The notes below the pieces were generated by a model. That model had not been told where the DNA came from and ran no database searches. It was given only the letters and a program-made list of their open reading frames with translations. The position numbers were made by a program, and so were the translations under genes. Of a stretch of 64,000 nt of DNA, positions 26,239-63,905 are shown piece after piece. Location of the stretch: NCBI RefSeq assembly GCF_000143415.4, contig NW_003314345.1:142574-206573 (forward strand), in the 5' to 3' direction. This DNA is from Selaginella moellendorffii. Taxonomy: Eukaryota > Plantae > Lycopodiophyta. Numbering within the stretch: the stretch's first letter is position 1; each line of letters begins with the position of its first letter.

Positions 26239-27195
26239 CTAGCTTGTATCCCTTCTCAAATGCTGGTGGCCGATACACATTCACGTTGAGCTGCCGGTAC
26301 TCTTCCGGATTGGCAGCGGGATTGGGACACCAGTCCACCTCAATGCTGCCCTTCGCATCCTCACACGTCTGGGAGGCATAAATGTGGACACGCAGCTCCC
26401 GGCCAGCAGCTTGAACGCACCCAAGATGATCCACTCCACGATCACGGGGGGCTTTTCCAATCCAACAGCGCTCCTGATTGTGGGATCGATGAGCGCGCAG
26501 ATCCCAGTCTCTACCAGCGGCTGCACGGGCTGAGGAAACGCGTCCAGCACCAGATGCTTGAGATCCTGGACGATGCTCTTGTTCTTGTCCGTGAAGATGG
26601 CGTTCTTGGCCTCGTACTCGCGAATGTACTCTCGCATCTCGGAAATGCTGTCTGGGATGCTTGTGATGCCCATCCTCATGCCCACGTCGTGCCACACAAC
26701 ATACGCGGCCTCCTTCTCGTTGTCGGTCCACTTGCGGAATCCAAACTTCTCGGAGAAATCAATGGGACTGATCACGTTGAGGCAGAGGACGTAGGCGAAT
26801 TGGTCGTTTGGGATCTTGAATTTGTTGTGGATTCCATTCAATCTCCTCACCGCGTACGAGCCGCGATCGCTGTCGACGTGGTGGTGGATCATCTCGCTCA
26901 CCAGAATGTTGGTCTCGGCGGCGCGCTTCTCAGGATCCTTGAGGCCGTACTTGGTCTTGAAGAGCAGATTTGTGATCCCGGGGATGCCCAGCGTGCGGAT
27001 GGTGCCAAACTCGAGCGCCTTTTGTGAGAGGAAGGGGAATTCCACCGAGTACATATACCACAAGATCTTTTGGGCATCTCTCACGGGGTGGAGTGATGCT
27101 AGAAATCTCGCTCTCTCTTTTCTCTTGCCAATGCACACCATCTTCCATGCTGCAGCCATCATGAGCAACGCAATCATCAACAAGATTGCAGCCAT
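26239..27195 (-). pseudogene. MpaB/DUF2236-like oxygenase, frameshifted (about 26362) and 3'-deleted
   Basis: Nearly identical to 43587-44624. There is a 1-nt loss in catcctc(c)acac and the last ~28 codons are removed. Confidence 0.88.
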
Positions 27196-27407
27196 TCTGA
27201 AATGGTTGCGTTGTGAAAACTGTTTAATCTACAATCTGTGCGTGCAAAAGAAAGAACGAGGTTGGTGAAACAAAGGGGTATTTATACCAATGATCCAACA
27301 AAGATCACATTTCACGTTTTCTATTCATGAGATTGGAAAGCTCACATTTGAGTATGGAAAATTCCCCATTTCCTGTAACACATTCCCCTTATGACTGAAC
27401 AAACAAC

Positions 27408-30400
27408 CATACTTACTGGAAAACGTGTTTGATTTGTAAAAATGACATTTGCAGACAAGCGTTTGCATACAGGTTTGCATTTCATTTGTAGAGGGTTGCC
27501 AAGTTAAATGAATATTCAAAGTTAAACCAGAATCTTTTACAGTCTTTTATGTTTCTTTCTGTAGGTGGGAAGCAATTGTTGGTGCAATGGCTTGCCAAGC
27601 CACCTCTTTTGATCATCCAGGGAAAAGACGAAACTCCTTGTGAGATTGATTCACTATTTGCAGTGTAGCTTATGAACAAGGCCACGAGCAAAGCCTCTGG
27701 ACTTGCAAGTTCTACAATGAGTTGAAATTTGATTTATTGAAGAGATTGATTGTGCATGTAGGGAGGGTCCCAAAGGAAGAGATTGAGGTTTGCTACAGTT
27801 AGGTGTTTTTGAATGTCTTCAATGAGATGCAAATGAAGTTCTTTAGTGATTATCACCATTGTGAACCACCACAAAAAGATGGTCCTACTGTCTACATTGC
27901 AAATGCTCAGTATGTGAATATCAATAGGGAAATTTTTAAGACTCCTTTCTGGAGATTAGCTTCTGCTACCTGCCCACCAATTGTGAGTCATGGAACATCA
28001 TCATTTCCACTAGGTAGTAATGCTCCAAATCAACAATCCTTGGTTGTGACAATGGATTTTGCTGCTTCGAATGATAATAATGCAGTAGATGCCCAGATAG
28101 GGCAAGCACTCTCTAGAGGACTTTCTAGCGAGCAACAACAGAGCAACATATCAGGTCCTATGAATTCTAGTGGGGGGACACAATTAGGCTTGGGCATAGC
28201 TATTGGTAGACAACAAAGCCTACATACAACATAGAAAAACTAGAGCTATATTGATGCATATGTTGCTGTTCATAGGTTCATCTATGAAATTGCATAAGCC
28301 TTCAATGTTGTGAACAGCTTGTACTAGAAAGAGATGCTCAGTGCTGTGGGGAAAGCTAATCCAGACTATTCTCAGTGTTTCTAAAGTATGAAGCGATCCG
28401 GGTGAAACATTTGAATGAGGAGTATGAAAGCTTGAATTCGAGACTAGATGTTGTGTGTGAAGGCTGGAAGGAATTTGGCTGCACGATCGTCATTGATAGC
28501 TAGCAATGCTCAAGGAAATGAAGCATTATGAACATGATGGCGGTGAGCATTCATGGATTAGGTGTTTCTGAAATTGTTTGATGCATTGGAGGAGAATAAA
28601 ATTGGTCTTTAGTTGTGGTCAAAGTTGAGGCTTATTCTCATAGAGGTTGGAGTTGAGAATGTGGTTCAAATGATCATTGATAATGGCTCCAACTTTGTTC
28701 GTATGGGGGATTTTATGGAGGAGTTTCCAAAGATTGTTCACAGCAAATGTGTTTGCCACTACTTGAGCCTCCTTTTGAAGGATATTACTAACCTTGATTG
28801 GGTTCAACCTTGTGTGAGCGGCTGTGAGAAGATTGTCAATTTCATGTTGAAGAAGCCAAGCTTGGTTATAGCATTCTGGAAAATCACTCCTCGAGACTTC
28901 ATTAAACCATCATCAATTAGATTTACATACAACTTCATGGTGATGAGCTCCTTGATTGAATCAATTGAATAGTTTTGCAGCAATTTGTGGTATTTCAAAT
29001 TACAACAAATGTGTTTGCCACTACTTGAGCCTCCTCTTGAAGGATATCACTAACCTTGATTGGGTTCAACCTTGTGTGAGCGGCTGTGAGAAGATTGGCA
29101 GTTTCATGTTGAAGAGGCCAAGCCTAATTATAGCATTCTAGAAAATCACCTCTTAAGACTTTATCAAACTAGTATTAATTAAACTTGCATACAACTTTAT
29201 GGTGATGAGCTCCTTGACTGAATCAGTTGAATAGTTTTGCAGCAGTTTGTGGTGTATTGTCAAAGAGCTCATCACCATGAAGTTGTATGCAAGTCTAATT
29301 GATACTAGTTTAATGAAGTCTCGAGGGGTGATTTTCCAGAATGTTGTAACCAGGCTTAGCCTCTTCAATATGAAATTGATAATCTTCTCACATCCACTCA
29401 CACAAGGTTGAACCCAATCAAAGTTAGTGATATCCTTCAAAAGGAGGCTCAAGCAGTGGTAAACACATTTGCTATGAACAATCTTTGGAAACTCCTCCTT
29501 CATGAAATCCCCTATGCGAACAAAGTTGGAGCCATTATCAATGATCATTTGAACTATATTCTCAACTCCAACCTTTATGAGAACAAGCCTCAACTTCAAC
29601 CACAACTAGAGACCGGCTTTCTTCTCCTCTAATGCTTCAAATGATTTCAGAAACACCTGATCCATGAATGCTCACCGCCATCAGGTTCACAATGCTTCAT
29701 TTCCTTGAGCATTGCCAACTATCAATGACAATCGTGCAGCCAAATTCCTTCCAGCCTTCACACACAATATCTAGCCTAGAGTTCAAGCTTTCATACTCCT
29801 CATTCAAATGTTTCACCCGGATTGCTTCATATTTTAAAGACATCGAGAAGTAGTTTGGACCAGCTTTCCTCACAGCATTGAGCATCTCTTCCCAATATAA
29901 ATTATTCACAACATTGAAGGCTTGTGCAGTTTTATAGATGAATTTGCAAACAATAATATCTACATCAATGTAACTTTGGTTTTGCCATGTTGTATGCAAG
30001 CTTTGTTGTCTACCAGCAGCCATGCCTAGGCCCAATTGCATCCCCCCAATAGGACTTGACATGTTGCTCTATTGTTGCCCGCTAGAAAGTCCTCTAGAGA
30101 GTGCTTGCCCTGTTTGGGCATCTGTTGCATTATTATCATTTGAAGTAGCAAAATCTATTGATGCAGCCAAGGATTGTTGACTTGGAGCATTACTACCTGG
30201 TGGAATGAAAATGTTTCATGACTCACAATTAGTGGGTAGGTAGCAGAAGCCAATCTTTGGAAAGGAGTCTTGAAAATTTTTCTGTTGATATTCACATATT
30301 ACACATTTGCAGTGTAGACAACAAGACCATCTTTTTGTGGTGGTTCACAGTGATGATAATCATTGAAGAACTTCATTCACATCTCATTGGGCACATTCAA

Positions 30401-30802
30401 GGGCACCTGACCCTAGCAAACCTCAATCTCTTCCCCTGGAACCCTCCTTACATGCGTAATCAATCTCTTTAGTGAACAAAATTTTAACTCATTGCAAAAC
30501 TTGTAGGTCCAAGGGCCTTGCCCGTGGCCTTGTTCATAAACTGCATTGTAGATAGTGAATTGATCTCATAGGGAGTTTTGTCTTTTCCCTAGATGATCAG
30601 AAGAGGTGGCTCAACGAGCCATTGCACCAACAATTGCCTCCTACCAGCAGAAAGGAATGTAAAAGATTGTAAAAGATTCTAGTTTTACTTGGAATATTTG
30701 TTTAATTTGGCAACCATTTGCAAATGGAACGCAAATGCAGACGCAAATGCCAGTTTGCAAACGAGGTTTTTACAAATCAAACGTGTTTTCCAGTAAGTAT
30801 GG
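27408..30802. mobile_element. Degenerate hAT (DUF659-type) transposase present as two inverted arms
   Basis: YEAIRVKHLNEEY...WKEFGCTIVIDSW, VGVENVVQMIIDNGSNFV and CVCHYLSLLLKDI occur on + (27.4-29.25 kb) and on - (29.26-30.8 kb). Many stop codons. Confidence 0.85.
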
Positions 30803-30879
30803 TAGATACTTCTTGTTCATTGATGGAACCAGACTTGTGGCCTGAAGCATTGTTGGAAGCATGCTTTTCTTGTTCGGTC

Positions 30880-31048
30880 GAAGTGTTCATGCCATGTGGA
30901 GGATTCAAAGGGCAGCATTGACGTGGACTGGTGTCCCAATCCCGCTGCGAATCCAGAAGAGTACCGGGTGTATCGGCATTTGAGAAGGGAGATAAAGCTG
31001 GTGGAGCATGGAGCGACCGGGGGATTGCACTGCCCCTTCGCAGAATAG
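30880..31048 (+). pseudogene. 3' fragment of the MpaB-like gene
   Basis: VEDSKGSIDVDWCPNPAANPEEYR...GGLHCPF. Confidence 0.8.
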
Positions 31049-33452: not shown

Positions 33453-33532
33453 CGCCAGCCTCGCTGCGTCCCAACTAGTCTAGGGCTTTGAGCATAGAAA
33501 CTTCTTTAACGTTTAAAAATCTTTGCTCTTCG

Positions 33533-40765: not shown

Positions 40766-42875
40766 ATGAAGAAGCTCGGATTCTTGGCGGAGACGCTCTG
40801 CTCGCAGCAATTCGTCAAGCTCGTCCTCGCCGCGGCTTTGCTCGCCTCCATCTTCCTCTACATCGGATCTCTCGTCGGCGATGACAGCAGCAGCAGCGGC
40901 GCCGTCCAGCTCAGGCGGCCGCATTCTGGTAAATTTCGCTCTTGCCCGCCATAACTTCTCACTGATTTGATCGATCGCGATGGCAGATGATTTGTCACCC
41001 AACACGGTTCGTCTGTCACTTCGATCCCAGCCACTCCAGATCCCTCCCGATGGAGTCAGCCTCTGCCCAAGCAACTTTACCGAGTACATCCCATGCCACG
41101 ATGCAAACTACATTGCTTCCATCTCCAGCAAGCTCAATTTCTCGAGAAGGGAGCACTTGGAGCGACAATGCCCCCCACCAAACCAGCGTCCTTTCTGCCT
41201 TGTTCCTCCACCAAAGTCCTACAAGCTTCCCATCCGGTGGCCCCAGAGCCGAGACTATGTGTGGAGGAGCAACGTAAACCATACCCGGCTAGCCGAAGTG
41301 AAAGGTGGCCAGAACTGGGTCCACGTTAAAGGCTCCACGATGTGGTTTCCGGGAGGAGGGACGCATTTCAAGCATGGAGCTCCCGAGTACATCCAGAGGT
41401 AACACTTCTTTCCTTCTCTCTTTTGATCCACTGATCCATCAACTTCGTGTAGACAGGCTAGGAAACATGACCACGGATTGGAAAGGAGATTTACAGACTG
41501 CTGGAGTGGCTCGAGTTTTGGACGTTGGCTGCGGAGTTGCAAGCTTTGCAGCTTATCTCTTCAACCTCGACATCCAGACCATGTCGTTTGCGCCGCTTGA
41601 CTCTCACGAGAATCAGATCCAGTTCGCTCTGGAACGAGGAATACCGGCTCTTGTTGCGGCGCTTGGAACCAAGCGCTTGCCGTATCCTTCCAGATCCTTC
41701 GATGCTGTTCACTGTTCCCGCTGTCGCGTCGATTGGCACGAAGATGGTAAGCATTAGTTGGAATCTCGTGCATGATATAAAAATGTTCTTTTCCGTGAAT
41801 CTGCAGGAGGTATTTTGCTCAGGGAAATGGACCGGATTTTAAGACCTGGTGGCTTCTTCATCTATTCTGCACCTCCAGCTTATCGCAAAGACAAGGATTT
41901 CCCTGAAGTTTGGAACATCCTGACCAACATTACAGAATCTCTTTGCTGGAAGCTGATCGCACGGCACGTCCAGACTGCGGTTTGGAGGAAGACCGCCGAC
42001 AGGTCCTGTCAGCTCGCCAAGTCCAAGCTGTGCGCTAACCAAAGCAAGGAGTCTCTAGACAACTCGTGGAACAAGCCACTGGACGACTGCATTGCCTTGT
42101 CTGAGGACAATGATGCCAATTTCGTCCAACTTCCTTCATGGCCGGAACGGCTTACAACTTACTCGAACCAGCTCGGTAACTTTGTTATATACTCCAGTAT
42201 GTGGTAACGGGATTTCTTTTGCACAGGGATCAGCTCATCTTCTTTCAAAGAAGACACATCTCTCTGGGAAGGCAAAGTTGGAGACTATTGGAAGCTGCTT
42301 AATGTATCCGAAAATTCCATTCGGAACGTTATGGATATGAATGCTGGATACGGAGGCTTTGCTGCTGCCTTGTTACTACAGAACAAGCCCGTGTGGATCA
42401 TGAACGTGGTTCCATCGGAATCTACCAACACTCTCAACGTTGTCTATGGTCGAGGCCTCGTAGGCACCTTGCATAGCTGGTACGTAGGCTTGCTCGTATT
42501 CACTTGGCTTTCTTCTCATTTCTTGCATCCACAGGTGCGAAAGCTTTTCGAGCTACCCGAGGAGCTACGACTTGTTGCACGCATATCGCGTGATGTCCCT
42601 CTATCCAGGGAGAAAAGGGTGCCAGATCGAAGATATAATGCTGGAAATGGATCGGCTGCTGAGACCGAATGTAAGTTTTCTCATTTGACTTCTAGGAGTT
42701 GATTCTAGCAACTACGACGCAGGCTCTTGCGATCTTTCAAGATTCCTCACGTGCGGTGCAGCGCATACTGGAGTTGGCACCAAGGTTCCTGTGGGTTGCC
42801 AGAGTCCATCGCATTCTTGAAAAAGACGAGCAGCTTCTTATATGCTCTAAGAAGTTCTGGATCGTCGACGTGTAA
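40766..42875 (+). CDS. Probable methyltransferase PMT (DUF248, type II membrane)
   Basis: N-terminal transmembrane segment, [52 protein letters not shown] and [10 protein letters not shown]. Confidence 0.93.
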
Positions 42876-43408
42876 GGTAGAGTATGGTGATGATTAGTCT
42901 TTAGTCTTCGAAGTTTTCCAGACAATGCACTGTGGCGACAGTAACAACAGGGTTGTCAGTATTCTCAGGCAGACACAACGATTTCGTTTAGGAGCTATTG
43001 TAGTCCAGCAAAGGTCCTAAGCGAGAGGCATGTGGTTAGTTTGTGCCAACATGATTCTCCAGGTATCCTACACCGACCAAAGCCAGCTTGCGCGAGGTAA
43101 AAGTTCGTTTTCGTTATTTCTTTTTACTCTGCTTTGTGCTACTTATGAGCTACTGCTGCAGGATATCCACGCGAAGATCATGTCAAGAGGCTGAGACTTT
43201 GGAACTCACTCGGAGTTGGAGTTTTTTGTCATCTCCAAGAGCTGTGCAGACATTTCCGGAGCCGGATTGGTGAAATTTCACTAGGAGGACATAGAAAATC
43301 ATTTAAACATATATTAAGTTGACGAAATCTCTATCAAGTATTAAAATGCCTATTCAGCAATTAAACAATGGCTTGATACAAATTCTTCCTTTGTATTCGT
43401 TGTCTGAT

Positions 43409-43480
43409 GTCGATGTAGTATAGTGGTGAGTATTTCCGCCTGTCACGCGGACGACCCGGGTTCGATCCCCGGCAACGGCG
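43409..43480 (+). tRNA. tRNA-Asp(GUC)
   Basis: Full 72-nt cloverleaf with anticodon arm tccgc-ctgtcac-gcgga. One A:A mismatch in the acceptor stem. Confidence 0.88.
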
Positions 43481-43586
43481 AGATTGCTTATAATTATAAA
43501 CTTTATTTGATCAATTGATCAATTGAATTAATAAATAATAACAAAACTACTATTAAGCAAACTAAACATATTTATTTAAGGTATTC

Positions 43587-44624
43587 CTATGCATGCATTT
43601 GCTGAAAGGGACAACGCAATCCTCCATCGTAGTATGGTCCAATCTTGCCGGATTTCAGCACTCCCAGCTCCGCCAGCTTGTATCCCTTCTCAAATGCTGG
43701 TGGCCGATACACATTCACGTTGAGCTGCCGGTACTCTTCCGGATTGGCAGCGGGATTGGGACACCAGTCCACCTCAATGCTGCCCTTCGCATCCTCCACA
43801 CGTCTGGGAGGCATAAATGCGGACACGCAGCTCCCGGCCAGCAGCTTGAACGCACCCAAGATGATCCACTCCACGATCACGGGGGGCTTTTCCAATCCAA
43901 CAGCGCTCCTGATTGTGGGATCGATGAGCGCGCAGATCCCAGTCTCTACCAGCGGCTGCACGGGCTGAGGAAACGCGTCCAGCACCAGATGCTTGAGATC
44001 CTGGACGATGCTCTTGTTCTTGTCCGTGAAGATGGCGTTCTTGGCCTCGTACTCGCAAATGTAGTCTCGCATCTCGGAAATGCTGTCTGGGATGTTTGTG
44101 ATGCCCATCCTCACGCCCACGTCGTGCCACACAACATACGCGGCCTCCTTCTCGTTGTCGGTCCACTTGCGGAATCCAAACTTCTCGGAGAAATCAATGG
44201 GACTGATCACGTTGAGGCAGAGGACGTAGGCGAATTGGTCGTTTGGGATCTTGAATTTGTTGTGGATTCCATTCAATCTCCTCACCGCGTACGAGCCGCG
44301 ATCGCTGTCGACGTGGTGGTGGATCATCTCGCTCACCAGAATGTTGGTCTCGGCGGCGCGCTTCTGGGGATCCTTGAGGCCGTACTTGGTCTTGAAGAGC
44401 AGATTTGTGATCCCGGGGATGCCCAGCGTGCGGATGGTGCCAAACTCGAGCGCCTTTTGTGAGAGGAAGGGGAATTCCACCGAGTACATATACCACAAGA
44501 TCTTGTGGGCATCTCTCACGGGGTGGAGTGACGCTAGAAATCTCGCTCTCTCTTTTCTCTTGCCAATGCACACCATCTTCCATGCTGCAGCCATCAACAC
44601 GATCATCAACAAGATTGCAGCCAT
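43587..44624 (-). CDS. MpaB/DUF2236 (ER-bound oxygenase / rubber oxygenase-like) protein, intronless, 345 aa
   Basis: N-terminal hydrophobic anchor, EFPF..KALEFG..RT.GIP.I..LL..T, KRAAET, RLNGIH, NDQFAYVL, FGFRKWTDNEK and VG.RMGI..IP, ending RCPF. Confidence 0.85.
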   Translation of the reverse strand: MAAILLMIVLMAAAWKMVCIGKRKERARFLASLHPVRDAHKILWYMYSVEFPFLSQKALEFGTIRTLGIPGITNLLFKTKYGLKDPQKRAAETNILVSEMIHHHVDSDRGSYAVRRLNGIHNKFKIPNDQFAYVLCLNVISPIDFSEKFGFRKWTDNEKEAAYVVWHDVGVRMGITNIPDSISEMRDYICEYEAKNAIFTDKNKSIVQDLKHLVLDAFPQPVQPLVETGICALIDPTIRSAVGLEKPPVIVEWIILGAFKLLAGSCVSAFMPPRRVEDAKGSIEVDWCPNPAANPEEYRQLNVNVYRPPAFEKGYKLAELGVLKSGKIGPYYDGGLRCPFQQMHA

Positions 44625-44982
44625 TTGGAAAGGAAAACTGTTTGATCGGTCCTGAAAACAGCTACTCTTCTGTGGGTTATGAAACAGGGGCAGGAGAAGA
44701 GGTATTTATCCTACAGAGATCACATCTCACGTTTTTAATTCCATGGTTCACCGTATCTTATTCCGTGCACGTAACCAGTATGTCCCATAAGTTGCACGTT
44801 TTCCATTTGGTCCTACCAAAACGTCTACACATCCTTGTTTACAATGTGCAAGTTAACGACAGATCACTTGCAAGCCTAAGACCACCCGAAAAGAATAACA
44901 TTGCCTAACCCTTAGCATGCTTATCTACCTGGTTATCTACCTGGTTTGTTTACAGTCCATTTGTGCCCAATGGGGTGCAATC

Positions 44983-45200: not shown

Positions 45201-45329
45201 GCAAAACAATTGCCAAACTTTTTCTTTCTCTGTGTTTGAATCTATTATCTGGAAGGTCTCCAGCCCATATGTTCGGCAGTCAGTTCTTTGTTTGATTGTC
45301 CACTAATAATGAATTATTATTTACTCTAC

Positions 45330-46200
45330 TGGTTTCATAACGGTCTAGAGAGAGAGTAGCCTCAGCCATGTGTAGCCTGGGCATCTTCCACGTCCACGTC
45401 CTTGACCTCCTGTTTGCGGACCGGGCATCGCCGGTCTGCCCAGGCCGTCACCACGCTCCGATTACGCTATGGAGATTGTGCATCTCCAGTCAGTATCTCG
45501 AAGCGTTTGCAGAGTTCGTTTCCCGAGTGGGTTGTAGACTGGAGGCCCGATTGTTCGAGTGATGTTTACATTGGCGAGATAGTATTGGAATTTTGTCTTG
45601 CGATCTGCGCCACGTAGCCAGCTTTTGAATGCCAGGCTGATCCAGCTATCGGGGACAGTGGTAACTGGTTGCTGGAGGAGAGTGTCCAGATCGACTTTAA
45701 GTTTCTTTGTCCGTCGCCTACAGTCATACCACCAGCCCGTGTTGTGACTGTCTGCGAGCAACTGGGAATCTTGAATTGCCACACACACACAGTGTCTCTG
45801 CGGGCGGTTAGGAGGAATTGGAGTGTGTCTCTCCACGCCAGGATTTCTGTTGGCATGGGAATTGGTTACAGCGCCCGAATTCCGGGCACCAATACAGGAG
45901 GATCAGGGGTGCTGTAATGTGTGCATCGCACATCTGTCGCATCCCATCGATATATGTTCGCGTTTCGCAGACTTGCCAAAAGTTGACGGTGTGCTCGTTG
46001 AGCAGCAGCAAGCTTGGTGTGCACTTCTACCTTCTAAGGACGTTGCTGATGCAGGGTGATGCTTGTACTGTGTTGCTCTTGTGGCATCATGGCCTGAATA
46101 TAACAGGGGGGGGTCCCTTCCCGAAAGCCAGCAGCTCTGTAGCTCTGTGTCTTACTGAGAGCTGTGTTCGTGCGCAGAATCTCGCGAGCGCATCACCCTG
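45330..46200 (-). mobile_element. Possible LINE ORF2 3' remnant in the spacer of the inverted repeat
   Basis: Broken Trp-rich reading frames (WWYDCRR..., WISLAFKSWLR). Unique in the window. The similarity is weak. Confidence 0.25.
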
Positions 46201-46392
46201 AACCACAATAAATAGAGTGTACTTGTGACCCACAAATTGCATAGACCACATGTTGTAAACGTACAATACAGGGACTATAGATTTTTTTATTGATGTTAAA
46301 TGAGTGGCTGAAAGAATGCACAGATCAAACAGCGTGCACGTTAGTGCTACATGAATAAAAAACGTGAAATGTGATCTCTATTGGATCACTGG

Positions 46393-46400
46393 TATAAATA
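46393..46400 (+). promoter_or_regulatory. TATA box of the MpaB-like gene
   Basis: tataaata about 95 bp upstream of ATG 46495, conserved upstream of the 27195 copy. Confidence 0.6.
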
Positions 46401-46494
46401 CCCCTTCTCTTGCCCATGTTTTCACCAACCTAGTTCTTTCTTTTGCACGCCCAGATTTTAGATCAAACAGTTTTCACAACGCAACCATTTCAGA

Positions 46495-47532
46495 ATGGCT
46501 GCAATCTTGTTGATGATCGTGTTGATGGCTGCAGCATGGAAGATGGTGTGCATTGGCAAGAGAAAAGAGAGAGCGAGATTTCTAGCGTCACTCCACCCCG
46601 TGAGAGATGCCCACAAGATCTTGTGGTATATGTACTCGGTGGAATTCCCCTTCCTCTCACAAAAGGCGCTCGAGTTTGGCACCATCCGCACGCTGGGCAT
46701 CCCCGGGATCACAAATCTGCTCTTCAAGACCAAGTACGGCCTCAAGGATCCCGAGAAGCGCGCCGCCGAGACCAACATTCTGGTGAGCGAGATGATCCAC
46801 CACCACGTCGACAGCGATCGCGGCTCGTACGCGGTGAGGAGATTGAATGGAATCCACAACAAATTCAAGATCCCAAACGACCAATTCGCCTACGTCCTCT
46901 GCCTCAACGTGATCAGTCCCATTGATTTCTCCGAGAAGTTTGGATTCCGCAAGTGGACCGACAACGAGAAGGAGGCCGCGTATGTTGTGTGGCACGACGT
47001 GGGCGTGAGGATGGGCATCACAAACATCCCAGACAGCATTTCCGAGATGCGAGACTACATTTGCGAGTACGAGGCCAAGAACGCCATCTTCACGGACAAG
47101 AACAAGAGCATCGTCCAGGATCTCAAGCATCTGGTGCTGGACGCGTTTCCTCAGCCCGTGCAGCCGCTGGTAGAGACTGGGATCTGCGCGCTCATCGATC
47201 CCACAATCAGGAGCGCTGTTGGATTGGAAAAGCCCCCCGTGATCGTGGAGTGGATCGTCTTGGGTGCGTTCAAGCTGCTGGCCGGGAGCTGCGTGTCCGC
47301 ATTTATGCCTCCCAGACGTGTGGAGGATGCGAAGGGCAGCATTGAGGTGGACTGGTGTCCTAATCCCGCTGCCAATCCGGAAGAGTACCGGCAGCTCAAC
47401 GTGAATGTGTATCGGCCACCAGCATTTGAGAAGGGATACAAGCTGGCGGAGCTGGGAGTGCTGAAATCCGGCAAGATTGGACCATACTACGATGGGGGAT
47501 TACGTTGTCCCTTTCAGCAAATGCATGCATAG
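46495..47532 (+). CDS. MpaB/DUF2236-like oxygenase, intronless, 345 aa
   Basis: Differs from the 43587-44624 protein by 2 residues (Q/E, I/V). Confidence 0.85.
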   Translation: MAAILLMIVLMAAAWKMVCIGKRKERARFLASLHPVRDAHKILWYMYSVEFPFLSQKALEFGTIRTLGIPGITNLLFKTKYGLKDPEKRAAETNILVSEMIHHHVDSDRGSYAVRRLNGIHNKFKIPNDQFAYVLCLNVISPIDFSEKFGFRKWTDNEKEAAYVVWHDVGVRMGITNIPDSISEMRDYICEYEAKNAIFTDKNKSIVQDLKHLVLDAFPQPVQPLVETGICALIDPTIRSAVGLEKPPVIVEWIVLGAFKLLAGSCVSAFMPPRRVEDAKGSIEVDWCPNPAANPEEYRQLNVNVYRPPAFEKGYKLAELGVLKSGKIGPYYDGGLRCPFQQMHA

Positions 47533-47592
47533 AAATACCTTTAATAAATTGTTATGGTTTTGTTATTACTTATTAATCCAATTGATTAATCT

Positions 47593-47664
47593 CGCCGTTG
47601 CCGGGGATCGAACCCAGGTCGTCCGCGTGACAGGCGGAAATACTCACCAGTATACTACAACGAC
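47593..47664 (-). tRNA. tRNA-Asp(GUC)
   Basis: Full cloverleaf, with D-loop variant ACTGG and one G-U pair in the T stem. Confidence 0.85.
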
Positions 47665-48279
47665 ATCAGACAACTAATAGAACTTAATTGCGCTCCTCGG
47701 ACCGTTGGTTCGCGGAAGGAACCCGGACGGCATGTCTGCGTTGAGCGGTTGCGATGGTCTCGGGGCCCTTTGGATCCAACGACCAGTACCTGCTCTCCAT
47801 CCGACGCACGAGTGTGTGCCACGCACGCGGGCCCCCTCTGGACGGCGTGGATTGCCGGACGCTTGACAAGCAGCTCAATGTGGTGCATGGTTTTTGGGAG
47901 AAACGGGACAGTGTGGTGAGGAGCCTCTTTCTCCTCTTTCTCCTCTCTCCTCTCCTCTCCTCCTCCATCGCATTAGGGATTGCGCTATCCCTTCCGCCGG
48001 GGCGCTGGCGCCATGAATCGCAGGCGCGTGGCTCCAGATTTTGGATACAATGCAGGGGTGCGCCGCGAATCCCATCCAGATTTGGGCAAGGCAATGCGGT
48101 GGATGATCTTCAAGGCGATCGATCTAGCTCCATTGGGAGCGGCGGCGAGGATTTGAAGCATCTGGATCGCGTATTATGCCAGCATCGAGCTCCGGCGCCG
48201 CGAAATATCACTGTGGATAGGCAGAGTAGCTCAGGATAGGGATTTCGGGCATCCGGCATCATGCCTCCCAGTAGAAGAA

Positions 48280-48496
48280 GCTCATCGGCGTCCCTCCTCC
48301 AGCAGCGCGGCAAGGGAGGCACAAAGCCTACCGCCATCACAAACTGGATTCCCTGCCAGGCTGCAGTAACATTCACCACAAATAAGATGAAAAACATGCT
48401 GGAACAGACGCTTACGAAAGAGTGAACACGCCACTCCCGGTGTTCAGGTTTGTGATCTTATTGTTATCCAGCTGGACATTAACAAGGGATGAAATC
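48280..48496 (-). pseudogene. Captured LRR receptor-like gene fragment with one intron
   Basis: Mirror copy of 61906-62120. Confidence 0.6.
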
Positions 48497-48834
48497 AATT
48501 GCTGAACAGACATTTTAATACTTGATAGAGATTTCGTCAGTTGAATATATGTTTAAATGATTTCTATGTCCTCCTAAAGTGAATTTCATGGACTGTCGGC
48601 TCAGGAAACGTCTGCACAGCTCTTGGGCATGACAAAAACTCCACCTCCGAGTGAGTTCCAAAGTCTTGGCCTCTTACATGACCTTCGCATAGATATCCTG
48701 CAGCAGTAGCTCAAGTAGCACAAAGCAGAGAAAACGAAAACGAACTTTTACCTCGTGCAAGCTGGCTTTGATCGGTGTAGGAGCTATGACCACACCTGGA
48801 GATTCATGTTGGCACAAACTAACCAAGATATGCA

Positions 48835-49023
48835 TGGTGCCAAACTCGAGCGTCTTTTGTGAGAGGAAGGGGAATTCCACCCAGTACATATACCACAAGA
48901 TCTTGTGGGCATCTCTCACGGGGTGGAGTGACGCTAGAAATCTCGCTCTATCTTTTCTCTTGCCAATGCACACCATCTTCCAGCCATCATGAGCAACACG
49001 GTCATCAACAAGATTGCAGCCAT
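48835..49023 (-). pseudogene. 5' fragment of the MpaB-like gene fused to PMT 3' flank
   Basis: MVCIGKRKDRARFLASLHPVRDAHKILWYMYWVEFPFLSQKTLEFGT, then unrelated flank sequence. Confidence 0.85.
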
Positions 49024-49381
49024 TTGGAAATGAAAACTGTTTGATCGGTCCTGAAAACAGCTTTTGTTTTCTACACTCCTCTGTGGGTTATGAAACAGGG
49101 GCAGGAGAAGAGGTAGTTATCCTACAGAGATCACATCTCACATTTTTAATTCCATGGTTCACCGTATCTTATTCCGTGCACGTAACCAGTATGTCCCATA
49201 AGTTGCACGTTTTCCATTTGGTCCTACCAAAACGTCTACACATCCTTGTTTACAATGTGCAAGTTAACGACAGATCACTTGCAAGCCTAAGACCACCCGA
49301 AAAGAATAACATTGCCTAACCCTTAGCATGCTTATCTACCTGGTTTGTTTACAGTCCATTTGTGCCCAATGGGGTGCAATC

Positions 49382-49590
49382 TTGTAGTATCTGGTGAGTA
49401 TTTCCACCTGTCACCCTGGCTGCTGTGCAGTTTTTCCTTGCATCACAAATGTTGAATGGCAGATACACATTAATGGGGCAGCGCGAGTGGGACTGCCCTT
49501 GGCATCCTCCACATTTCTACCATGAACTGATTCCACTCCACAATCACCCAGGGCTTTTCCAATGGGATCGCCACCATTGGGTCTCTGGAG
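49382..49590. pseudogene. Old tRNA-Asp relic and MpaB 3' relic
   Basis: Same sequence as 44983-45200. Confidence 0.65.
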
Positions 49591-50476
49591 CCAATCCCCG
49601 AGCAAAACAATTGCCAAACTTTTTCTTTCTCTGTGTTTGAATCTATTATCTGGAAGGTCTCCAGCCCATATGTTCGGCAGTCAGTTCTTTGTTTTACAGG
49701 CATTCATGACAAATGGATTGTCTCACAAATTCATGACTCACTAATAATGAACTGTTGTGATTTTCTCAGAAGTGCCAAATATCCCTGGCTTGCCCTCTGT
49801 GACGCCACACAGCTTGGACTAATCGACAACCATGGACGAGGAGGAGAAGCAATCCATGGAGCTCTTGTGAGAGGCATTTCCAAATGCTCCTGCCTGGGAT
49901 CTCGAGCAAGAACAGCAAGGACAGTGCCAGGTCAAAAAGGCCCTCCCCACTCAGACTTTCTTAGATAAAATGGTGATCATTCTGGCTCATGCCAGGGAGC
50001 AGCTGTGTCTTGTAGAGAAGTGCAAGGCTGTGAGCTGACTTGCAATTGCAAGCTGTGGAGATCATGCCTAAGAGCAAGGCCTAAGAACAGAAAAATTAGA
50101 GGATGGCCTTTTTAGTTTCATATATCAAGAAAGAAATGATAAAAGATTCTATTGTATCTTTTATCTGTTCTTTACTTTTTAAAAAACCTTGATCTAAAGT
50201 CATTCATTGACTTTACTTGATTTAAACCAAATGATTTTGGCTTTGGTTCTAAGTTATGTTTTACAAACTTTAGTTAAGGTGGTGGGAAGTTAGGATGTTC
50301 TAATCAAGACATCACTTTCTTCAAGTTCATTTCTCTTTTTTCTTCTCATTTTATTGTTTTTTCATATAGTCTTTTCCATTAGAATCAACCACTTAAGGAC
50401 TTCACATACACCTTAATTGTGAATCTCTCTAAAAATAAATATTGAAGCTAACATTCCTCTAAAGTAGGGAAAAGGG

Positions 50477-55329: not shown

Positions 55330-58300
55330 TCTCAACTAACTTAGGTGGAAACTGAAAAAGGATCTAGCAATACCAACTTCTTATCATCATGGTAGTAAGG
55401 AAAGAATATCTAAAGGACTAGCCAATAAATAACTTTTGATATCTGCAGTCACATTCACAACAATTATGGATGGGCACCTTAAAGTACAATACAACAATTT
55501 ATGTGTTTTATAACCCAAAAAGCCAAACTTCAAACATACAATTGTCCAAGTATATCAAGAAGCTTAAGGGATATGTAGGTGCATATAGTTTTCACCCTTT
55601 ATCCTTTGGTGCTTTACCACCTTATCCCTTGGACACATGGGCCAAAGCCAATGGAGCAAAAATTAGTCTTACTGAACAAAGGGATAGAATCAAACTCCTA
55701 GTTAAGGAATGAAGGAATTGAAGCACATAATGACTTCTTAACATACAACCCAAGAAGCAGAGGAACAAGAATATGGAGCAACATGAAATTAGTCCTAAAG
55801 CATTTATCATCCCAACACTCACAAGGTAAAAGTTTGTTTTCATTATTTCTTTTTACTCTGTTTTGTGCTACTTATGGTCCATGTGAAGATCATGTCAAGA
55901 GCCTATAGATATAGTTCAGTCTTCTTAAGACTATACTTCCAAGCCTCAAGTCAAACTCTATATTCCATTGCCATCTTTTATATCTTCCACGAGAGATATC
56001 CACTCCAAGATGCAAAGGCATCATAATTTTCAAAGCCCAGCCTATGTTCTTAGTGTGAGAAGATTTGAGAGTACCCTTTGACCACCACTTTGCGTTCTTT
56101 CCATATTAATATAGTCTCCCTAAACCTAATGCTTGCAATGAGATTACCAACATTTCGAGGTTGACAAACCTGAATTTTACACCTTCAAGGAACCCCATGG
56201 AAATATCATATGTTATTCAGAGTTTATGGGCTTTGAAACCCAGCACCTTATCCCAGTGGTCAACTGTCATGAATTCCATAGTTCACCTGCAAAAGAAGGT
56301 ACCATTCAAGAATATTATGTACTTACTAATGCAAGTCATAAGTTGTGGCTATAAATGACACTTGTGCATGTTCTTCCACATGACTGCAAGCCCGTGATAA
56401 ATTCCAAACACCTATATATGTGAGTCCATCTGAACAAAGAAAAACTAAGCAAGTAATTCAGAGCTCCAAAAGTATTACTTCATCTGTGATCTTATGGGGA
56501 AGCTTCCATTGCATGGATAACCATAGTTATCTAGCTTTCATACTCGCTCTATTCATGCCTAAAGCATCCAAGTTGCAAAAAAGTCTGTGCTTTTTGGCTC
56601 CATAGTAACAGTCTCCCAGATCTGACAATAAGAAAATATATAAAACTTAGCCCCAGATCAAAGAGCACACCAAAGTTCCATTGGAGGTGAGCTCAAAGAT
56701 CTCAATTGACCATTGCCTGAGCAAAAGAACACTTAGCCACCAGAGGAAAATGAGCCAAAAGGCCATTCAAACAAAGAAAAAAAACTTTGCTTTTGTTCTT
56801 GAAAACATAGTCCTTACTTCCAAGTTAAAATTTTGCAGCTTGCAGCTAACAAAAACTTAAAAACTTTCCCAGATGCTTGAAAATTAGAATGGAACCTTGA
56901 TAGGATGCTATTTTGTTTGTCTCTGCCAAAGGATAACTGTTCTGATGCAACTTGGCCAGCATTCTCATAGGTTTTCTGGACATTTGACCTAGAAAATCCA
57001 TCTTTGAAGTAGGGAGCTTATCTTGGAAAGTATCAAAGCCACCTTACCAAGACAGTGCTAAAAATGTGGTGGCAGCCAACACAATCCCCAACATGTTTTG
57101 CAAGAATTAATGTAGATTCCTTAGCATGGCTGTAGAATAAAACTTCTACGAGACCAGAAGTGTGTAAATAATAATCACCAATTTTCTTAAGAGAATTTAT
57201 AAACTAGAGTATTAACTGTTTAGGAAAAGACAAGATTATTCTAAATGAATATTATGGGATATTCTACTATTTAATATCTAAGTATATTCTAGGTATTGCT
57301 TATGCAAACCAAAAATACATTAAAAATATCACTACCAACCATGACAATATGATAACATATAAGGTATAGTAGATGCAATCTAGCATATGTAACTATACTC
57401 TCTTTTTCATGTTGCCCTTCATACCTAACCACCTAGGACAACTCAGAATCTAAGCACTATGCCATAGTAGATAGCGACAAGTGAGGGTTCATCTTAGGGT
57501 TTAGGTGCTCGCATTGCCACCTGCTCACTTCAGCACAAAACAATGCCATCCATGGCAGTGCCAACAGTGGGCAATGGGACATGGAGCAAATGGAGCAGGG
57601 GCAGCAGTCCTTATGGTTGGGCAGTAGCCTTATTGACATGCAGCTGCAGCAGTATTAAAAGATCAGCAGCAGCAGCAGTGGTGGTGGCAAAAGACCATAG
57701 CAGCAGACAACAGCAACAACAGTAAAAGTACATCTAGGATTAGTGTAGGTTCCTCAGGAAGAGAAGAGAGCACTTTCCACTTGGGACAATGAGTCTAGTG
57801 ATGATAGTGAAGCAAGTGGAGATAGCAAAGATGTTCATTTCTTTGCCATGAAAAATGGATTGACAATGGAAGAAGTTACTTTGGTTCATGTGACAATCTG
57901 TACTTTGTGACCAAAGCATCAAAACTTCACAATATTTTGACAGGGGTTGGTTGGCATGGGATGTTTTTGATGAAGCAAGCACTAGACATAACAACAAAGT
58001 TGTGGGAGCTAATTGACTTTGGAATATGTAGGAAGCAACTAGGGAATGATGGATGCCTATGGCATTTTGAGGTGGGTTGGGATAAAGCTTTGGAATCATA
58101 ATGTTTGTTTAGCATTGCAAATCATTGATCTAGTGTGGCATGCCTAGTGGTTTTAACAAGTTATTGATTATAATATACCATCATCCCATTACATTGTGGT
58201 TGTAGAGCTTTGTATGAACATATGAGGTGATACAGTCTATGACATTTACATTGGAGTTGTAAAGCAGTTTAGTCAGCCTAGACTCATGCATAAAGATTTT

Positions 58301-60737
58301 GGACCAATTTTAATCTCATTGAAAAAGATATGAATGAGACTTTAGGTGTGGATGAGCATTCTTTCATAGAAGGGCCCTTTAAAAGAAACACTAGAAGATA
58401 AAATCCATAAAACACATTAAAATGTGTTTATAAAAATTCAACATAAAAAACCAATTTACTATATAAAATCACATGTTTTCAATATAATATTTTAGGTTTT
58501 ATAACTTAGTAGAAAGATCAAACAAACCATTCTAGCATTCTTATTAGCAATAAATTTTCCTATTTTTTTCATTCTTAATATAAATATCCACAATCCTAAA
58601 TAAAAAATTTTCTATTAATTTGTTTTCATTTCCAAGTTGGTTGGCTTAGAATCCTTTGGCAATGAACAAATAGGAGTCAATTTTGATTCTTATCAAGAAG
58701 GCCATTTCCTTTGAAAATTGAAAGTTTAAACTTTTTAGAAATGCTTGAATTTAGGGGCATTCTTTAAAAAATTTGAGTTGGGAGAATTTTTGGCTTATGA
58801 CATTCAATTATAAGTTGGGGCATAAAATGTTTATGCCTTGGTTTTTAGTAATGAATAAAATTATAGAATCCCAAACTTGAACACAGTCACTTTGCTAAAA
58901 AAATTGCACATACAAACCGTCAAACAACTTTAATTCAACAAATATATTATAGAAAAGTTTTAAAATTTTATAAGGATATTCTATATGTTGCTTCTTGTTG
59001 CACAAGAATTTTTTCTAGTGTGAATGACACAATTAAAACAAAAATTTATAGCAGTTTTTGAGTTAATTATTTTAAAAATATAATATTTTATTTTTTGATT
59101 CTCAAATCCTAAAATGTATGAAATTGCACTATGACTTCATCAAATAAGTGTTCAATGTACTTCTTATACCATTTGCTTCACTTTCTTTAGATGTTACTAA
59201 AGACTAATGAGTTTGTCTAATGATCTTTTGCTTAACAATATAGTAGAAATAATTACTCAAAATTTAACTATATATACATTCAAGAAGCTGGGTTTATAGT
59301 TAGATGTGCTAAAATTTTGTTATACCTTTTTGCTTAGTTTTGTATGACACTCAAGTGATGTTTGACTAGGAGTATCATAATTAGTGGCACTAATTGACAA
59401 CTACCTTTTATAAGAGAGAGACTTTTTAAAAGTCACTCTTTGTACTATTAATCTAGAAGTGAGTAAGTACTAGTTTTTACTTACAAAATTCTTCAAAATT
59501 ACAAAATTCTTTACCACTCTACACATATTTATTGTGTCTTTATTCTATGTGTCGAGCTCTAAAACCTTCCCAAGCTCAAACTTAAACAAATCCTCACTAT
59601 TATAACCTTCACTTACAATCTTATCAAAAAAACTTACCGAAATGTTAATGGCACATAGCCCATATATATAATCACTTAACTTTAATGTATATAGCGCCTT
59701 AAATCAAATGTGACTTAAAGCGATTCTGGTGAATGAAATAGTAAAAGAAACAATAAAAGTAAAATAAAAAAGTATTTTATATCTTTTCTTATTAACCGAT
59801 CACTTTGCACCTCATGCATAAATTGTTTGGTGTCTAGATCACTTCATTTAATTTATACTATTGGGAAAAACATGGTTTAATTAAAAACCCAATAAACCCT
59901 AGAGCAAAACCTATGCATGAACTTTGTATATTAAAAGGAACAAAAAAAGAAAAAAAACACATATGTTTAGTATTTACTTTGAAACTTTTTGCCTTAATAT
60001 TAATTAAAGTTTTTTAACAAAAAATCTTTCATAATAATTCAAAAGTGGTTGAACTTCCCTAATTTCATCCATTTCTATGCTTAATTTGTTAAATATTTTT
60101 AGCTCACTAGGTGGTTGTGCATGAAATTTCTCAAATACGTTCAACCATTAAATTTCATCTTTAAACTAAGATTTTTAAAAGCTAAATCAAAAATTATACA
60201 GCATAATAATATAAAAGCACCAAGTTATTATACATAGTTAATTGATAAATTTTCCATTTATCTAATCCTCAACCAATCTCCAAAGACATTTAAATTATTA
60301 TCTAATATAAAGAATAACCAACTTTGATGTAAAATATCCAAGTCAAACTTGGTAATTCACATGTTGTTATGAATTTAACATATGTTCTAGGGGAAATTCA
60401 AGAGCAAAAATCAATCTAAAAATTAAAAAGGGGGAAGAGAAAAATTAGACTTATAAGCCTATAAACTCTATTTGCCCTTTGGATCTTGAGTGTAATTTTT
60501 TTTATTTTCTTAGTGAGAACCATAGATAATACAAATAGATGTTGATTTTTTCAAAGATAGAAAAGCTCAATGAGGTATATGGAAAAAGATTGTTAAAAGA
60601 TTTATCAATTAAATAAAACTTATAAAAAGAAATGAGATTTCTATATTCTACACTCTCTATTTTTTGTATAAGAGTTTAATATAATAATGTTTATTTAATA
60701 TATGCTTAATCACCTTACTCTACTTGTATTGAAGTAT
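55330..60737 (+). repeat. Copy B of the long direct duplication (lacks the PMT pseudogene)
   Basis: Colinear with 15255-22625 apart from a ~2-kb gap. Confidence 0.85.
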
Positions 60738-60819
60738 AACATATGGGCTGGAGACCTTCCAGATAATAGATTCAAACACAGAGAAAGAAAAAGTTTGGCA
60801 ATTGTTTTGCTCGGGGATT

Positions 60820-61030
60820 GGCTCCAGAGACCCAATGGTGGCGATCCCATTGGAAAAGCCCTGGGTGATTGTGGAGTGGAATCAGTTCATGGTAGAAATG
60901 TGGAGGATGCCAAGGGCAGTCCCACTCGCGCTGCCCCATTAATGTGTATCTGCCATTCAACATTTGTGATGCAAGGAAAAACTGCACAGCAGCCAGGGTG
61001 ACAGGTGGAAATACTCACCAGATACTACAA
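60820..61030. pseudogene. Old MpaB 3' relic (+) and tRNA-Asp relic (-)
   Basis: Mirror copy of 49382-49590. Confidence 0.65.
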
Positions 61031-61388
61031 GATTGCACCCCATTGGGCACAAATGGACTGTAAACAAACCAGGTAGATAAGCATGCTAAGGGTTAGGCAA
61101 TGTTATTCTTTTCGGGTGGTCTTAGGCTTGCAAGTGATCTGTCGTTAACTTGCACATTGTAAACAAGGATGTGTAGACGTTTTGGTAGGACCAAATGGAA
61201 AACGTGCAACTTATGGGACATACTGGTTACGTGCACGGAATAAGATACGGTGAACCATGGAATTAAAAATGTGAGATGTGATCTCTGTAGGATAACTACC
61301 TCTTCTCCTGCCCCTGTTTCATAACCCACAGAGGAGTGTAGAAAACAAAAGCTGTTTTCAGGACCGATCAAACAGTTTTCATTTCCAA

Positions 61389-61577
61389 ATGGCTGCAATC
61401 TTGTTGATGACCGTGTTGCTCATGATGGCTGGAAGATGGTGTGCATTGGCAAGAGAAAAGATAGAGCGAGATTTCTAGCGTCACTCCACCCCGTGAGAGA
61501 TGCCCACAAGATCTTGTGGTATATGTACTGGGTGGATTTCCCCTTCCCCTCACAAAAGACGCTCGAGTTTGGCACCA
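61389..61577 (+). pseudogene. 5' fragment of the MpaB-like gene fused to PMT 3' flank
   Basis: Mirror copy of 48835-49023. Confidence 0.85.
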
Positions 61578-61905
61578 TGCATATCTTGGTTAGTTTGTGC
61601 CAACATGAATCTCCAGGTGTGGTCATAGCTCCTACACCGATCAAAGCCAGCTTGCACGAGGTAAAAGTTCGTTTTCGTTTTCTCTGCTTTGTGCTACTTG
61701 AGCTACTGCTGCAGGATATCTATGCGAAGGTCATGTAAGAGGCCAAGACTTTGGAACTCACTCGGAGGTGGAGTTTTTGTCATGCCCAAGAGCTGTGCAG
61801 ACGTTTCCTGAGCCGACAGTCCATGAAATTCACTTTAGAAGGACATAGAAATCATTTAAACATATATTCAACTCTATCAAGTATTAAAATGTCTGTTCAG
61901 CAATT

Positions 61906-62120
61906 GATTTCATCCCTTGTTAATGTCCAGCTGGATAACAATAAGATGACAAACCTGAACACCGGGAGTGGCGTGCTCACTCTTTCGTAAGCGTCTGTTC
62001 CAGCATGTTTTTCATCTTATTTGTGGTGAATGTTACTGCAGCCTGGCAGGGAATCCAGTTTGTGATGGCAGTAGGCTTTGTGCCTCCCTTGCCGCGCTGC
62101 TGGAGGAGGGACGCCGATGA
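61906..62120 (+). pseudogene. Captured LRR receptor-like gene fragment with a ~55-nt intron
   Basis: ISSLVNVQLDNNKMTNLNTGSGVLTLS [gtaag...tgcag] LAGNPVCDGSRLC corresponds to a last LRR plus a C-terminal cap. Confidence 0.6.
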
Positions 62121-62737
62121 GCTTCTTCTACTGGGAGGCATGATGCCGGATGCCCGAAATCCCTATCCTGAGCTACTCTGCCTATCCACAGTGATATTTC
62201 GCGGCGCCGGAGCTCGATGCTGGCATAATACGCGATCCAGATGCTTCAAATCCTCGCCGCCGCTCCCAATGGAGCTAGATCGATCGCCTTGAAGATCATC
62301 CACCGCATTGCCTTGCCCAAATCTGGATGGGATTCGCGGCGCACCCCTGCATTGTATCCAAAATCTGGAGCCACGCGCCTGCGATTCATGGCGCCAGCGC
62401 CCCGGCGGAAGGGATAGCGCAATCCCTAATGCGATGGAGGAGGAGAGGAGAGGAGAGAGGAGAAAGAGGAGAAAGAGGCTCCTCACCACACTGTCCCGTT
62501 TCTCCCAAAAACCATGCACCACATTGAGCTGCTTGTCAAGCGTCCGGCAATCCACGCCGTCCAGAGGGGGCCCGCGTGCGTGGCACACACTCGTGCGTCG
62601 GATGGAGAGCAGGTACTGGTCGTTGGATCCAAAGGGCCCCGAGACCATCGCAACCGCTCAACGCAGACATGCCGTCCGGGTTCCTTCCGCGAACCAACGG
62701 TCCGAGGAGCGCAATTAAGTTCTATTAGTTGTCTGAT

Positions 62738-62809
62738 GTCGTTGTAGTATACTGGTGAGTATTTCCGCCTGTCACGCGGACGACCTGGGTTCGATCCCCG
62801 GCAACGGCG
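62738..62809 (+). tRNA. tRNA-Asp(GUC)
   Basis: Identical to 47593-47664. Confidence 0.85.
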
Positions 62810-62869
62810 AGATTAATCAATTGGATTAATAAGTAATAACAAAACCATAACAATTTATTAAAGGTATTT

Positions 62870-63905
62870 CTATGCATGCATTTGCTGAAAGGGACAACGT
62901 AATCCCCCATCGTAGTATGGTCCAATCTTGCCGGATTTCAGCACTCCCAGCTCCGCCAGCTTGTATCCCTTCTCAAATGCTGGTGGCCGATACATTCACG
63001 TTGAGCTGCCGGTACTCTTCCGGATTGGCAGCGGGATTAGGACACCAGTCCACCTCAATGCTGCCCTTCGCATCCTCCACACGTCTGGGAGGCATAAATG
63101 CGGACACGCAGCTCCCGGCCAGCAGCTTGAACGCACCCAAGACGATCCACTCCACGATCACGGGGGGCTTTTCCAATCCAACAGCACTCCTGATTGTGGG
63201 ATCGATGAGCGCGCAGATCCCAGTCTCTACCAGCGGCTGCACGGGCTGAGGAAACGCGTCCAGCACCAGATGCTTGAGATCCTGGACGATGCTCTTGTTC
63301 TTGTCCGTGAAGATGGCGTTCTTGGCCTCGTACTCGCAAATGTAGTCTCGCATCTCGGAAATGCTGTCTGGGATGTTTGTGATGCCCATCCTCACGCCCA
63401 CGTCGTGCCACACAACATACGCGGCCTCCTTCTCGTTGTCGGTCCACTTGCGGAATCCAAACTTCTCGGAGAAATCAATGGGACTGATCACGTTGAGGCA
63501 GAGGACGTAGGCGAATTGGTCGTTTGGGATCTTGAATTTGTTGTGGATTCCATTCAATCTCCTCACCGCGTACGAGCCGCGATCGCTGTCGACGTGGTGG
63601 TGGATCATCTCGCTCACCAGAATGTTGGTCTCGGCGGCGCGCTTCTCGGGATCCTTGAGGCCGTACTTGGTCTTGAAGAGCAGATTTGTGATCCCGGGGA
63701 TGCCCAGCGTGCGGATGGTGCCAAACTCGAGCGCCTTTTGTGAGAGGAAGGGGAATTCCACCGAGTACATATACCACAAGATCTTGTGGGCATCTCTCAC
63801 GGGGTGGAGTGATGCTAGAAATCTCGCTCTCTCTTTTCTCTTGCCAATGCACACCATCTTCCATGCTGCAGCCATCAACACGATCATCAACAAGATTGCA
63901 GCCAT
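62870..63905 (-). pseudogene. MpaB/DUF2236-like oxygenase with a 2-nt deletion near 62992 (310 aa, altered C-terminus)
   Basis: ccgatacattcacg here versus ccgatacacattcacg in the other copies. The span is 1036 nt versus 1038. It may be a sequencing error. Confidence 0.75.

Follow-up and report, generated by a model that had tools for sequence, protein, structure and literature searches.

Three characterised enzymes stand closest to the genes described here. The latex-clearing protein (Lcp) cleaves polyisoprene (PMC6311187), whereas the fungal MpaB' is an oxygenase of the endoplasmic reticulum (ER) that cleaves a double bond in the farnesyl chain of FDHMP during mycophenolic acid synthesis (10.1101/524025; PMC11934065). 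The third, trans-anethole oxygenase (TAO), acts on trans-anethole according to the title of its PDB entry (8s1j). Our study concerns a stretch of 64,000 nucleotides (nt) of the lycophyte Selaginella moellendorffii (contig NW_003314345.1, positions 142,574 to 206,573 of the forward strand), which we call the window and in which all coordinates are given unless another sequence is named; it carries several copies of an intronless gene for a 345-residue protein of the MpaB/Lcp family. In our assessment, the window probably carries a young, recombination-driven cluster of nuclear genes for membrane-anchored proteins of the MpaB/Lcp/TAO family, and this family is old in eukaryotes and vertically inherited in land plants.

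The copies were located by means of the list of open reading frames (ORFs) and a tblastn comparison of the 345-residue product against the window, and the fragments by a sensitive search. They are listed below together with the upstream box of copy C.

46495 to 47532, plus strand: copy C, an intact 345-residue MpaB/Lcp-family gene without an intron (ORF, PF09995 match and cover by contigs of RNA runs)
43587 to 44624, minus strand: copy B, intact, 345 residues (ORF and PF09995 match; 99.5% nucleotide identity to copy C)
62873 to 63905, minus strand: copy D, the twin of copy C within a 99.4% identical inverted duplication, frameshifted by a 2-nt deletion near codon 305
26237 to 27195, minus strand: copy A, truncated at codon 318; its anchor has 6 additional nt, in frame, and 1 nt is deleted near codon 276
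25736 to 25932, plus strand: 5' fragment, coding nucleotides 1-184, about 72% amino acid identity
48824 to 49023, minus strand: 5' fragment, coding nucleotides 1-191, with upstream DNA
61389 to 61588, plus strand: 5' fragment that mirrors 48824-49023 in the inverted duplication
30895 to 31045, plus strand: old 3' relic, residues 276-342, 52% amino acid identity
45131-45162, 49532-49563 and 60849-60880: three shreds of 32 nt
46394 to 46401, plus strand: TATAAATA box, about 95 nt 5' of the copy C ATG

The coding sequence of the intact copies runs uninterrupted for 1038 nt, and an 841-nt contig from an RNA run is collinear with positions 46523-47361 of copy C, with no gap for an intron. Copy D is 99.8% identical to copy C at the nucleotide level, and the end of copy A at codon 318 coincides with a duplication boundary. 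A preliminary description of this DNA, made from the letters alone, had recognised two intact and two damaged intronless copies of a 345-residue gene, which correspond to copies B and C and to copies A and D, respectively. It had also counted about eight fragments; fragments are present, but we find four clear ones and three shreds. The TATA promoter that it proposed is seen in copies C and A, where a TATAAATA box stands about 95 nt 5' of the start codon; a 14-mer containing this box in copy C recurs upstream of copy A (27275-27288, minus strand). The corresponding box of copy B reads GATAAATA, and the promoter region of copy D extends beyond the end of the window.

The assignment of these proteins to the DUF2236/MpaB family, previously made from motifs, was checked with the Pfam hidden Markov model PF09995 (MPAB_Lcp_cat, DUF2236). 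The two intact products score 40.3 and 39.3 bits over residues 84-248, with a gathering cut-off of 23, and fold and catalytic triad agree with this result. When a profile of the plant proteins was compared with the PDB, the sole match by sequence was TAO (8s1j, E 4.5e-4), with the KRxxxT and NxIH motifs aligned, and there was no match to Lcp at E≤10. The AlphaFold model, which was built on a 16-sequence alignment (pLDDT 78, pTM 0.80), is all-helical and begins with a long helix spanning residues 2-32. A Foldseek search of the PDB with this model returned two real matches only, namely 8s1j (TM 0.65/0.73 over about 295 columns) and Lcp (5o1m/5o1l, TM about 0.5), the second of which is the structural comparison that the preliminary description had proposed as a check.

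It has been reported that the near-invariant DUF2236 residues of LcpK30 are R164, T168 and H198, where H198 binds the heme as its proximal ligand and the other two belong to the distal site (PMC6311187). From motif and spacing, we infer that R89, T93 and H121 are their counterparts in the window protein. In the plant-clade alignment, R89 and T93 are present in at least 90% of the sequences and H121 in 100%, and the triad was found in all the named eukaryotic and bacterial relatives that were aligned. The motifs noticed earlier are also in place, that is, a hydrophobic N-terminus as the predicted anchor, KRAAET at residues 88-93, RLNGIH at residues 116-121 and the terminal CPF at residues 338-340. 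The anchor consists of the predicted helix 2-32 (hydropathy 2.41) followed by a basic KRKERAR stretch, and it looks uncleaved. At the other end of the protein, LRCPF (residues 336-340, positions 47500-47514) includes a Cys-Pro pair that the plant proteins have conserved and that is found again in Pharyngomonas, Batrachochytrium, Chaetoceros, Sistotremastrum and one Streptomyces protein; its resemblance to Cys-Pro heme-regulatory motifs is mentioned as an idea only.

By analogy with the characterised relatives, the window protein is most likely a heme-b oxygenase, anchored in the ER, whose lipophilic substrate is cleaved at a C=C bond, because Lcp, MpaB' and TAO all cleave such bonds and the triad and the fold are kept. 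The helix of residues 2-32, followed by KRKERAR, would anchor the all-helical domain in the ER membrane; this domain would bind heme b via His121, with Arg89 and Thr93 on its distal side; and the enzyme would use O2 to cleave the double bond of an isoprenoid chain or an aryl-propene into carbonyl products. The isoprenoid-cleavage chemistry suggested in the preliminary description can be regarded as a reasonable analogy for this enzyme.

The genes are active, as purifying selection and transcription of the subfamily show. The ratio of nonsynonymous to synonymous substitution rates (dN/dS) is 0.12-0.14 between the window copies and those of the S. moellendorffii reference assembly (dS 0.23), 0.18 between the window copies and a paralogue of 69% amino acid identity, and 0.19 between copies B and C, which differ by 5 nt. 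For transcription, contigs from four public runs were aligned to positions 43000-48500 (5,501 letters). The contigs of all four runs cover the ORFs, as exemplified by the 841-nt contig with 8 differences (99%), and word depth over the ORFs reaches 300-1000 in one run, whereas the spacer at 44656-46311 has no contig cover in any of the four. Two factors indicate that the runs are derived from RNA or cDNA. First, three of them skip introns of neighbouring genes (43094>43160 and/or 48360>48416). Second, the contigs of the fourth carry a loose end that we take to be a cDNA cloning adaptor. The preliminary description had made an active role depend on expression, and both the cover of the ORFs without the spacer and the dN/dS values of 0.12-0.19 speak for such a role. 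A 59-nt skip within copy B in one run (44005>44065) was considered as an intron and rejected, given that its ends are CG..AG and 6 other letters stand in between; we read it as paralogue divergence.

It could also be argued that the copies in the window are duplicates in decay and that only paralogues elsewhere in the genome function, or that the protein binds heme without being an enzyme. Of the four long copies, two are broken, fragments are numerous, the RNA contigs are not assignable to a single copy, and the homologue of the moss Physcomitrium is truncated. In a Physcomitrium RNA-run contig (190-1270), a stop follows after 202 amino acids and a core segment of the old 356-residue model is missing, so that this homologue looks degenerate although it is transcribed. 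We nevertheless consider decay or a non-enzymatic role rather improbable for the window genes, since the catalytic triad is intact, the 841-nt contig matches copy C at 99%, and the selection values given above, both between the two intact copies (0.19, with only 5 nt of difference) and against the reference copies (0.12-0.14), point to purifying selection.

The family extends well beyond Selaginella. Within S. moellendorffii, a word search identified proteins at 93% and 69% amino acid identity, with the NCBI name 'mycophenolic acid synthesis protein B-like'. In a profile search, full-length homologues of 36-42% identity were found in Cryptomeria japonica (three), Taxus chinensis, Adiantum (two species), Ceratopteris richardii and Physcomitrium patens, and cluster look-ups add four Sphagnum species and two further Ceratopteris genes. 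Outside the land plants, the same look-ups show relatives in prasinophytes (Pycnococcus and Pseudoscourfieldia), a cryptophyte (Hemiselmis), diatoms (Chaetoceros and Cyclotella), a chlorarachniophyte (Lotharella), a heterolobosean (Pharyngomonas), chytrids (Batrachochytrium and Polyrhizophydium) and Dikarya (Sistotremastrum and Dactylellina). An exhaustive profile search retrieved 2440 cluster representatives at E≤1e-3, and many proteins of 330-390 residues match the profile from end to end; since even the conifer and moss members are missing from its best 150 matches, a group that is not listed there may still have the gene. The earlier statement that this is not a familiar seed-plant family holds in part: conifers have members, but no flowering-plant member is among the named hits. 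The plant proteins are already annotated in public databases, and our literature searches on MpaB/DUF2236 (PF09995) in plants found no paper on plant members of the family.

Three trees agree in placing the land plants in one clade. In the IQ-TREE analysis, this clade has a support of 99/95, is recovered in 100% of the bootstrap trees and contains conifer, fern, moss and Selaginella subclades. The named bacteria (95/87) and the Dikarya (98/94) form separate clades, and the remaining eukaryotes side with the plants (86/88), except for one long-branch chytrid paralogue. The architecture of the proteins runs parallel to these groups. Plants and every named eukaryotic member, among them prasinophytes, diatoms, a cryptophyte, a heterolobosean and chytrids, share an N-terminal hydrophobic anchor (best 19-residue hydropathy 1.3-3.0) and an insertion of 20-35 residues between the PPR and GYK motifs, whereas the bacterial proteins (about 285 residues) have neither the anchor (hydropathy at most 0.25) nor the insertion. 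The GYK..LG motif was also considered as a eukaryote-only extension and was rejected, as bacteria have it too. Judging by these sequences, mosses, lycophytes, ferns and conifers have the family by vertical inheritance within land plants and not by a recent acquisition from a microbe.

The preliminary description had instead proposed horizontal transfer into Selaginella, to be abandoned if a phylogeny showed vertical inheritance, and the vertical pattern is what the trees show within land plants. Homologues of the same architecture occur in mosses, ferns and conifers, and the land plants form one clade that is not nested in fungi or bacteria. For the idea of a recent entry of an MpaB/Lcp gene from a fungus or bacterium into the Selaginella lineage, followed by amplification, three observations can be cited: the gene has no introns and stands among split genes, fungi and bacteria are the groups in which the family is best known, and clusters of Ascomycota and Basidiomycota come first in a feature search. 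With full-length moss, fern and conifer homologues in one clade with Selaginella, and with Dikarya and bacteria in clades of their own, we find this idea scarcely credible. It is important to note that intronlessness is no transfer signal here, because the Sphagnum gene is intronless as well (1104 nt for 367 codons plus stop) and the 69% S. moellendorffii paralogue has a canonical GT..AG intron. This intron (98 nt, phase 2, positions 6456-6553 of the GL377594.1 stretch) lies at the equivalent of window codon 148, so that it was either lost in the amplified subfamily or acquired by the paralogue. The gene span exceeds the coding sequence by 90-126 nt in Cryptomeria, Taxus and Adiantum, and this arithmetic of gene spans suggests one short intron in each of these genes. 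A false candidate for horizontal transfer is thereby removed, and neither the lack of introns nor the 'microbial' name of the family is evidence of transfer.

An older event has to be weighed separately, in which the ancestor of land plants, or of the green lineage, received the gene from a bacterium and passed it on vertically ever since. In the approximately unbiased (AU) test, a grouping of plants with bacteria was not rejected (p 0.195); the eukaryotic distribution is patchy, the genes have few introns, and the best non-plant word matches are bacterial, cyanobacteria included. The same test does not reject a grouping of plants with prasinophytes, that is, the green lineage, either (p 0.25), and the anchor and the 20-35-residue insertion are common to plants and other eukaryotes and absent from bacteria. 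Given also that all the eukaryotes except the long-branch chytrid paralogue group together against the bacteria (86/88), we regard an ancient bacterial origin as unlikely and favour a family that is old in eukaryotes.

Several points weigh against our interpretation of the window genes as active oxygenases of an old eukaryotic family. First, the tree does not fix the order of its deepest branches. Second, the absence of flowering plants from the named hits rests on a word-based search only. Third, the C-terminal 60 residues of the AlphaFold model are of low confidence, and K167, the distal lysine ligand of Lcp, is not kept: the window protein has E92 before T93 and the plant clade has D or E, as in TAO. 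Fourth, heme binding and C=C cleavage are proposed by analogy with relatives at 14-19% identity. Finally, the records only guess the run type to be 'RNA', and the contigs differ by about 1-4% from the window copies, some of them with the 6-nt anchor variant, so that they may come from near-identical paralogues; transcription is therefore established for the subfamily and not for a particular copy.

As a broader and more tentative proposal, which we put forward as a possibility, non-flowering land plants and many other eukaryotes might keep an uncharacterised ER-anchored heme-b dioxygenase for isoprenoid or phenylpropene double bonds, independent of the iron-dependent carotenoid cleavage dioxygenases; flowering plants would have lost this enzyme, and Selaginella would have multiplied it for metabolism specific to its lineage. 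As C=C cleavage is common to the three characterised relatives, and as the plant clade is conserved, selected, expressed and locally amplified, this clade is a concrete candidate for a step, as yet unknown, at which mosses, lycophytes, ferns and conifers cleave an alkene. If the clade is truly missing from flowering plants, as it appears to be, this would explain why it was overlooked.

The amplification itself can be followed in the duplicated segments of the window and in a tRNA gene that accompanies the copies, listed as follows.

46400 to 49674, no strand assigned: left arm of a 3.3-kb inverted duplication, 99.4% identical to 60738-64000
60738 to 64000, no strand assigned: right arm of the same 3.3-kb inverted duplication, which may extend past the window end
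47592 to 47665, minus strand: tRNA-Asp(GTC), 60 nt beyond the copy C stop, convergent, in the duplicated unit
43408 to 43481, plus strand: tRNA-Asp(GTC), downstream of copy B, convergent
62737 to 62810, plus strand: tRNA-Asp(GTC), downstream of copy D, convergent

The earlier claim of repeated duplication is borne out by self-comparison of the window, which shows both direct and inverted copies, and by a further cluster of three copies in the reference assembly. Copies B and C belong to an older inverted pair, with 91.5% identity across the unit and 99.5% in the coding sequence, and the 5' end of the gene with its upstream DNA has been copied at 25282-25938, 44434-45293, 48834-49694 and 60738-61578. 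A convergent tRNA-Asp(GTC) lies 60-105 nt past the stop in three of the four long copies (B, C and D), and the repeat unit therefore comprises promoter, coding sequence and tRNA. Positions 15780-22626 match 41085-43192 and 55824-60738 at 84-89%; these segmental duplicates carry a PF03141 methyltransferase gene and its flanking DNA, which makes the whole region a mosaic of duplications. We propose that the units would have been copied in direct and inverted orientation by recombination, and that some copies would then have decayed through small deletions or truncation. The separate cluster of the reference assembly (GL377605.1) has three intronless copies within 9 kb at 92% nucleotide identity; its flanks are unrelated to the window, and no tRNA-Asp was found in it.

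The neighbouring genes include the PF03141 (Methyltransf_29) methyltransferase in at least three pieces, a TPR/GT41 gene of the SPINDLY type, a class III peroxidase and a DUF659 transposon relic. The neighbours had been described as intron-rich, and the genes around are indeed split plant genes, with spliced joints in RNA-run contigs at 43094>43160 (GT..AG) and 48360>48416. We looked among them for biosynthetic cluster partners of the mpaA/C/DE/G/H type and found none in the window; the neighbourhood gives no hint of the substrate. Inside the inverted duplication, positions 47757-48500 (mirrored at about 62640-61900) are transcribed and include a 55-nt intron at 48361-48415, with GT..AG on the minus strand (a CT..AC joint, 48360>48416), which was seen in three runs; the two long ORFs of this segment have no Pfam match. 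Next to copy A, an inverted pair of 1.5-kb repeats (27406-28955 versus 30803-29260, 85%) flanks the DUF659 (hAT-associated) ORF, and this ORF with its inverted repeats is probably a transposon relic. Apart from the oxygenase genes, positions 10001-12000 present a strong strand asymmetry (GC skew -0.25, AT skew -0.46).

Within S. moellendorffii, the nearest relatives of the window genes belong to the same subfamily: the LOC112349549 cluster (GL377605.1), with 93% amino acid identity and three intronless genes within 9 kb, and the gene named 'mycophenolic acid synthesis protein B-like' (GL377594.1), with 69% amino acid identity and, unlike the window copies, one intron of 98 nt. Fungal MpaB and MpaB' of Penicillium are placed in the same Pfam family and represent its membrane-associated eukaryotic form, and the Selaginella and Physcomitrium proteins carry MpaB-derived names at NCBI; however, the MpaB-type proteins of Dikarya form their own clade (98/94) and have longer C-termini (400-440 residues), and the plant genes (99/95) are not orthologues of mpaB. 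Lcp of Streptomyces sp. K30 (5o1l/5o1m) has the DUF2236 domain, a globin-like all-helical fold and an R/T/H triad at heme b like that of the window protein, but it is a bacterial polyisoprene enzyme with K167 at the distal site, where the window protein has E92. Lcp is secreted and has a secretion signal, whereas the window genes are nuclear plant genes whose product has an N-terminal hydrophobic helix that looks uncleaved. TAO of Stenotrophomonas maltophilia (8s1j) is a soluble bacterial protein of about 300 residues that is 19% identical, has neither the N-terminal anchor nor the insertion or tail after PPR, and acts on an aryl-propene. By both sequence and fold, it is nevertheless the closest solved structure to the window protein, and the two have in common the KRxD/E-T and NxIH motifs, with an acidic residue instead of a lysine before the threonine.

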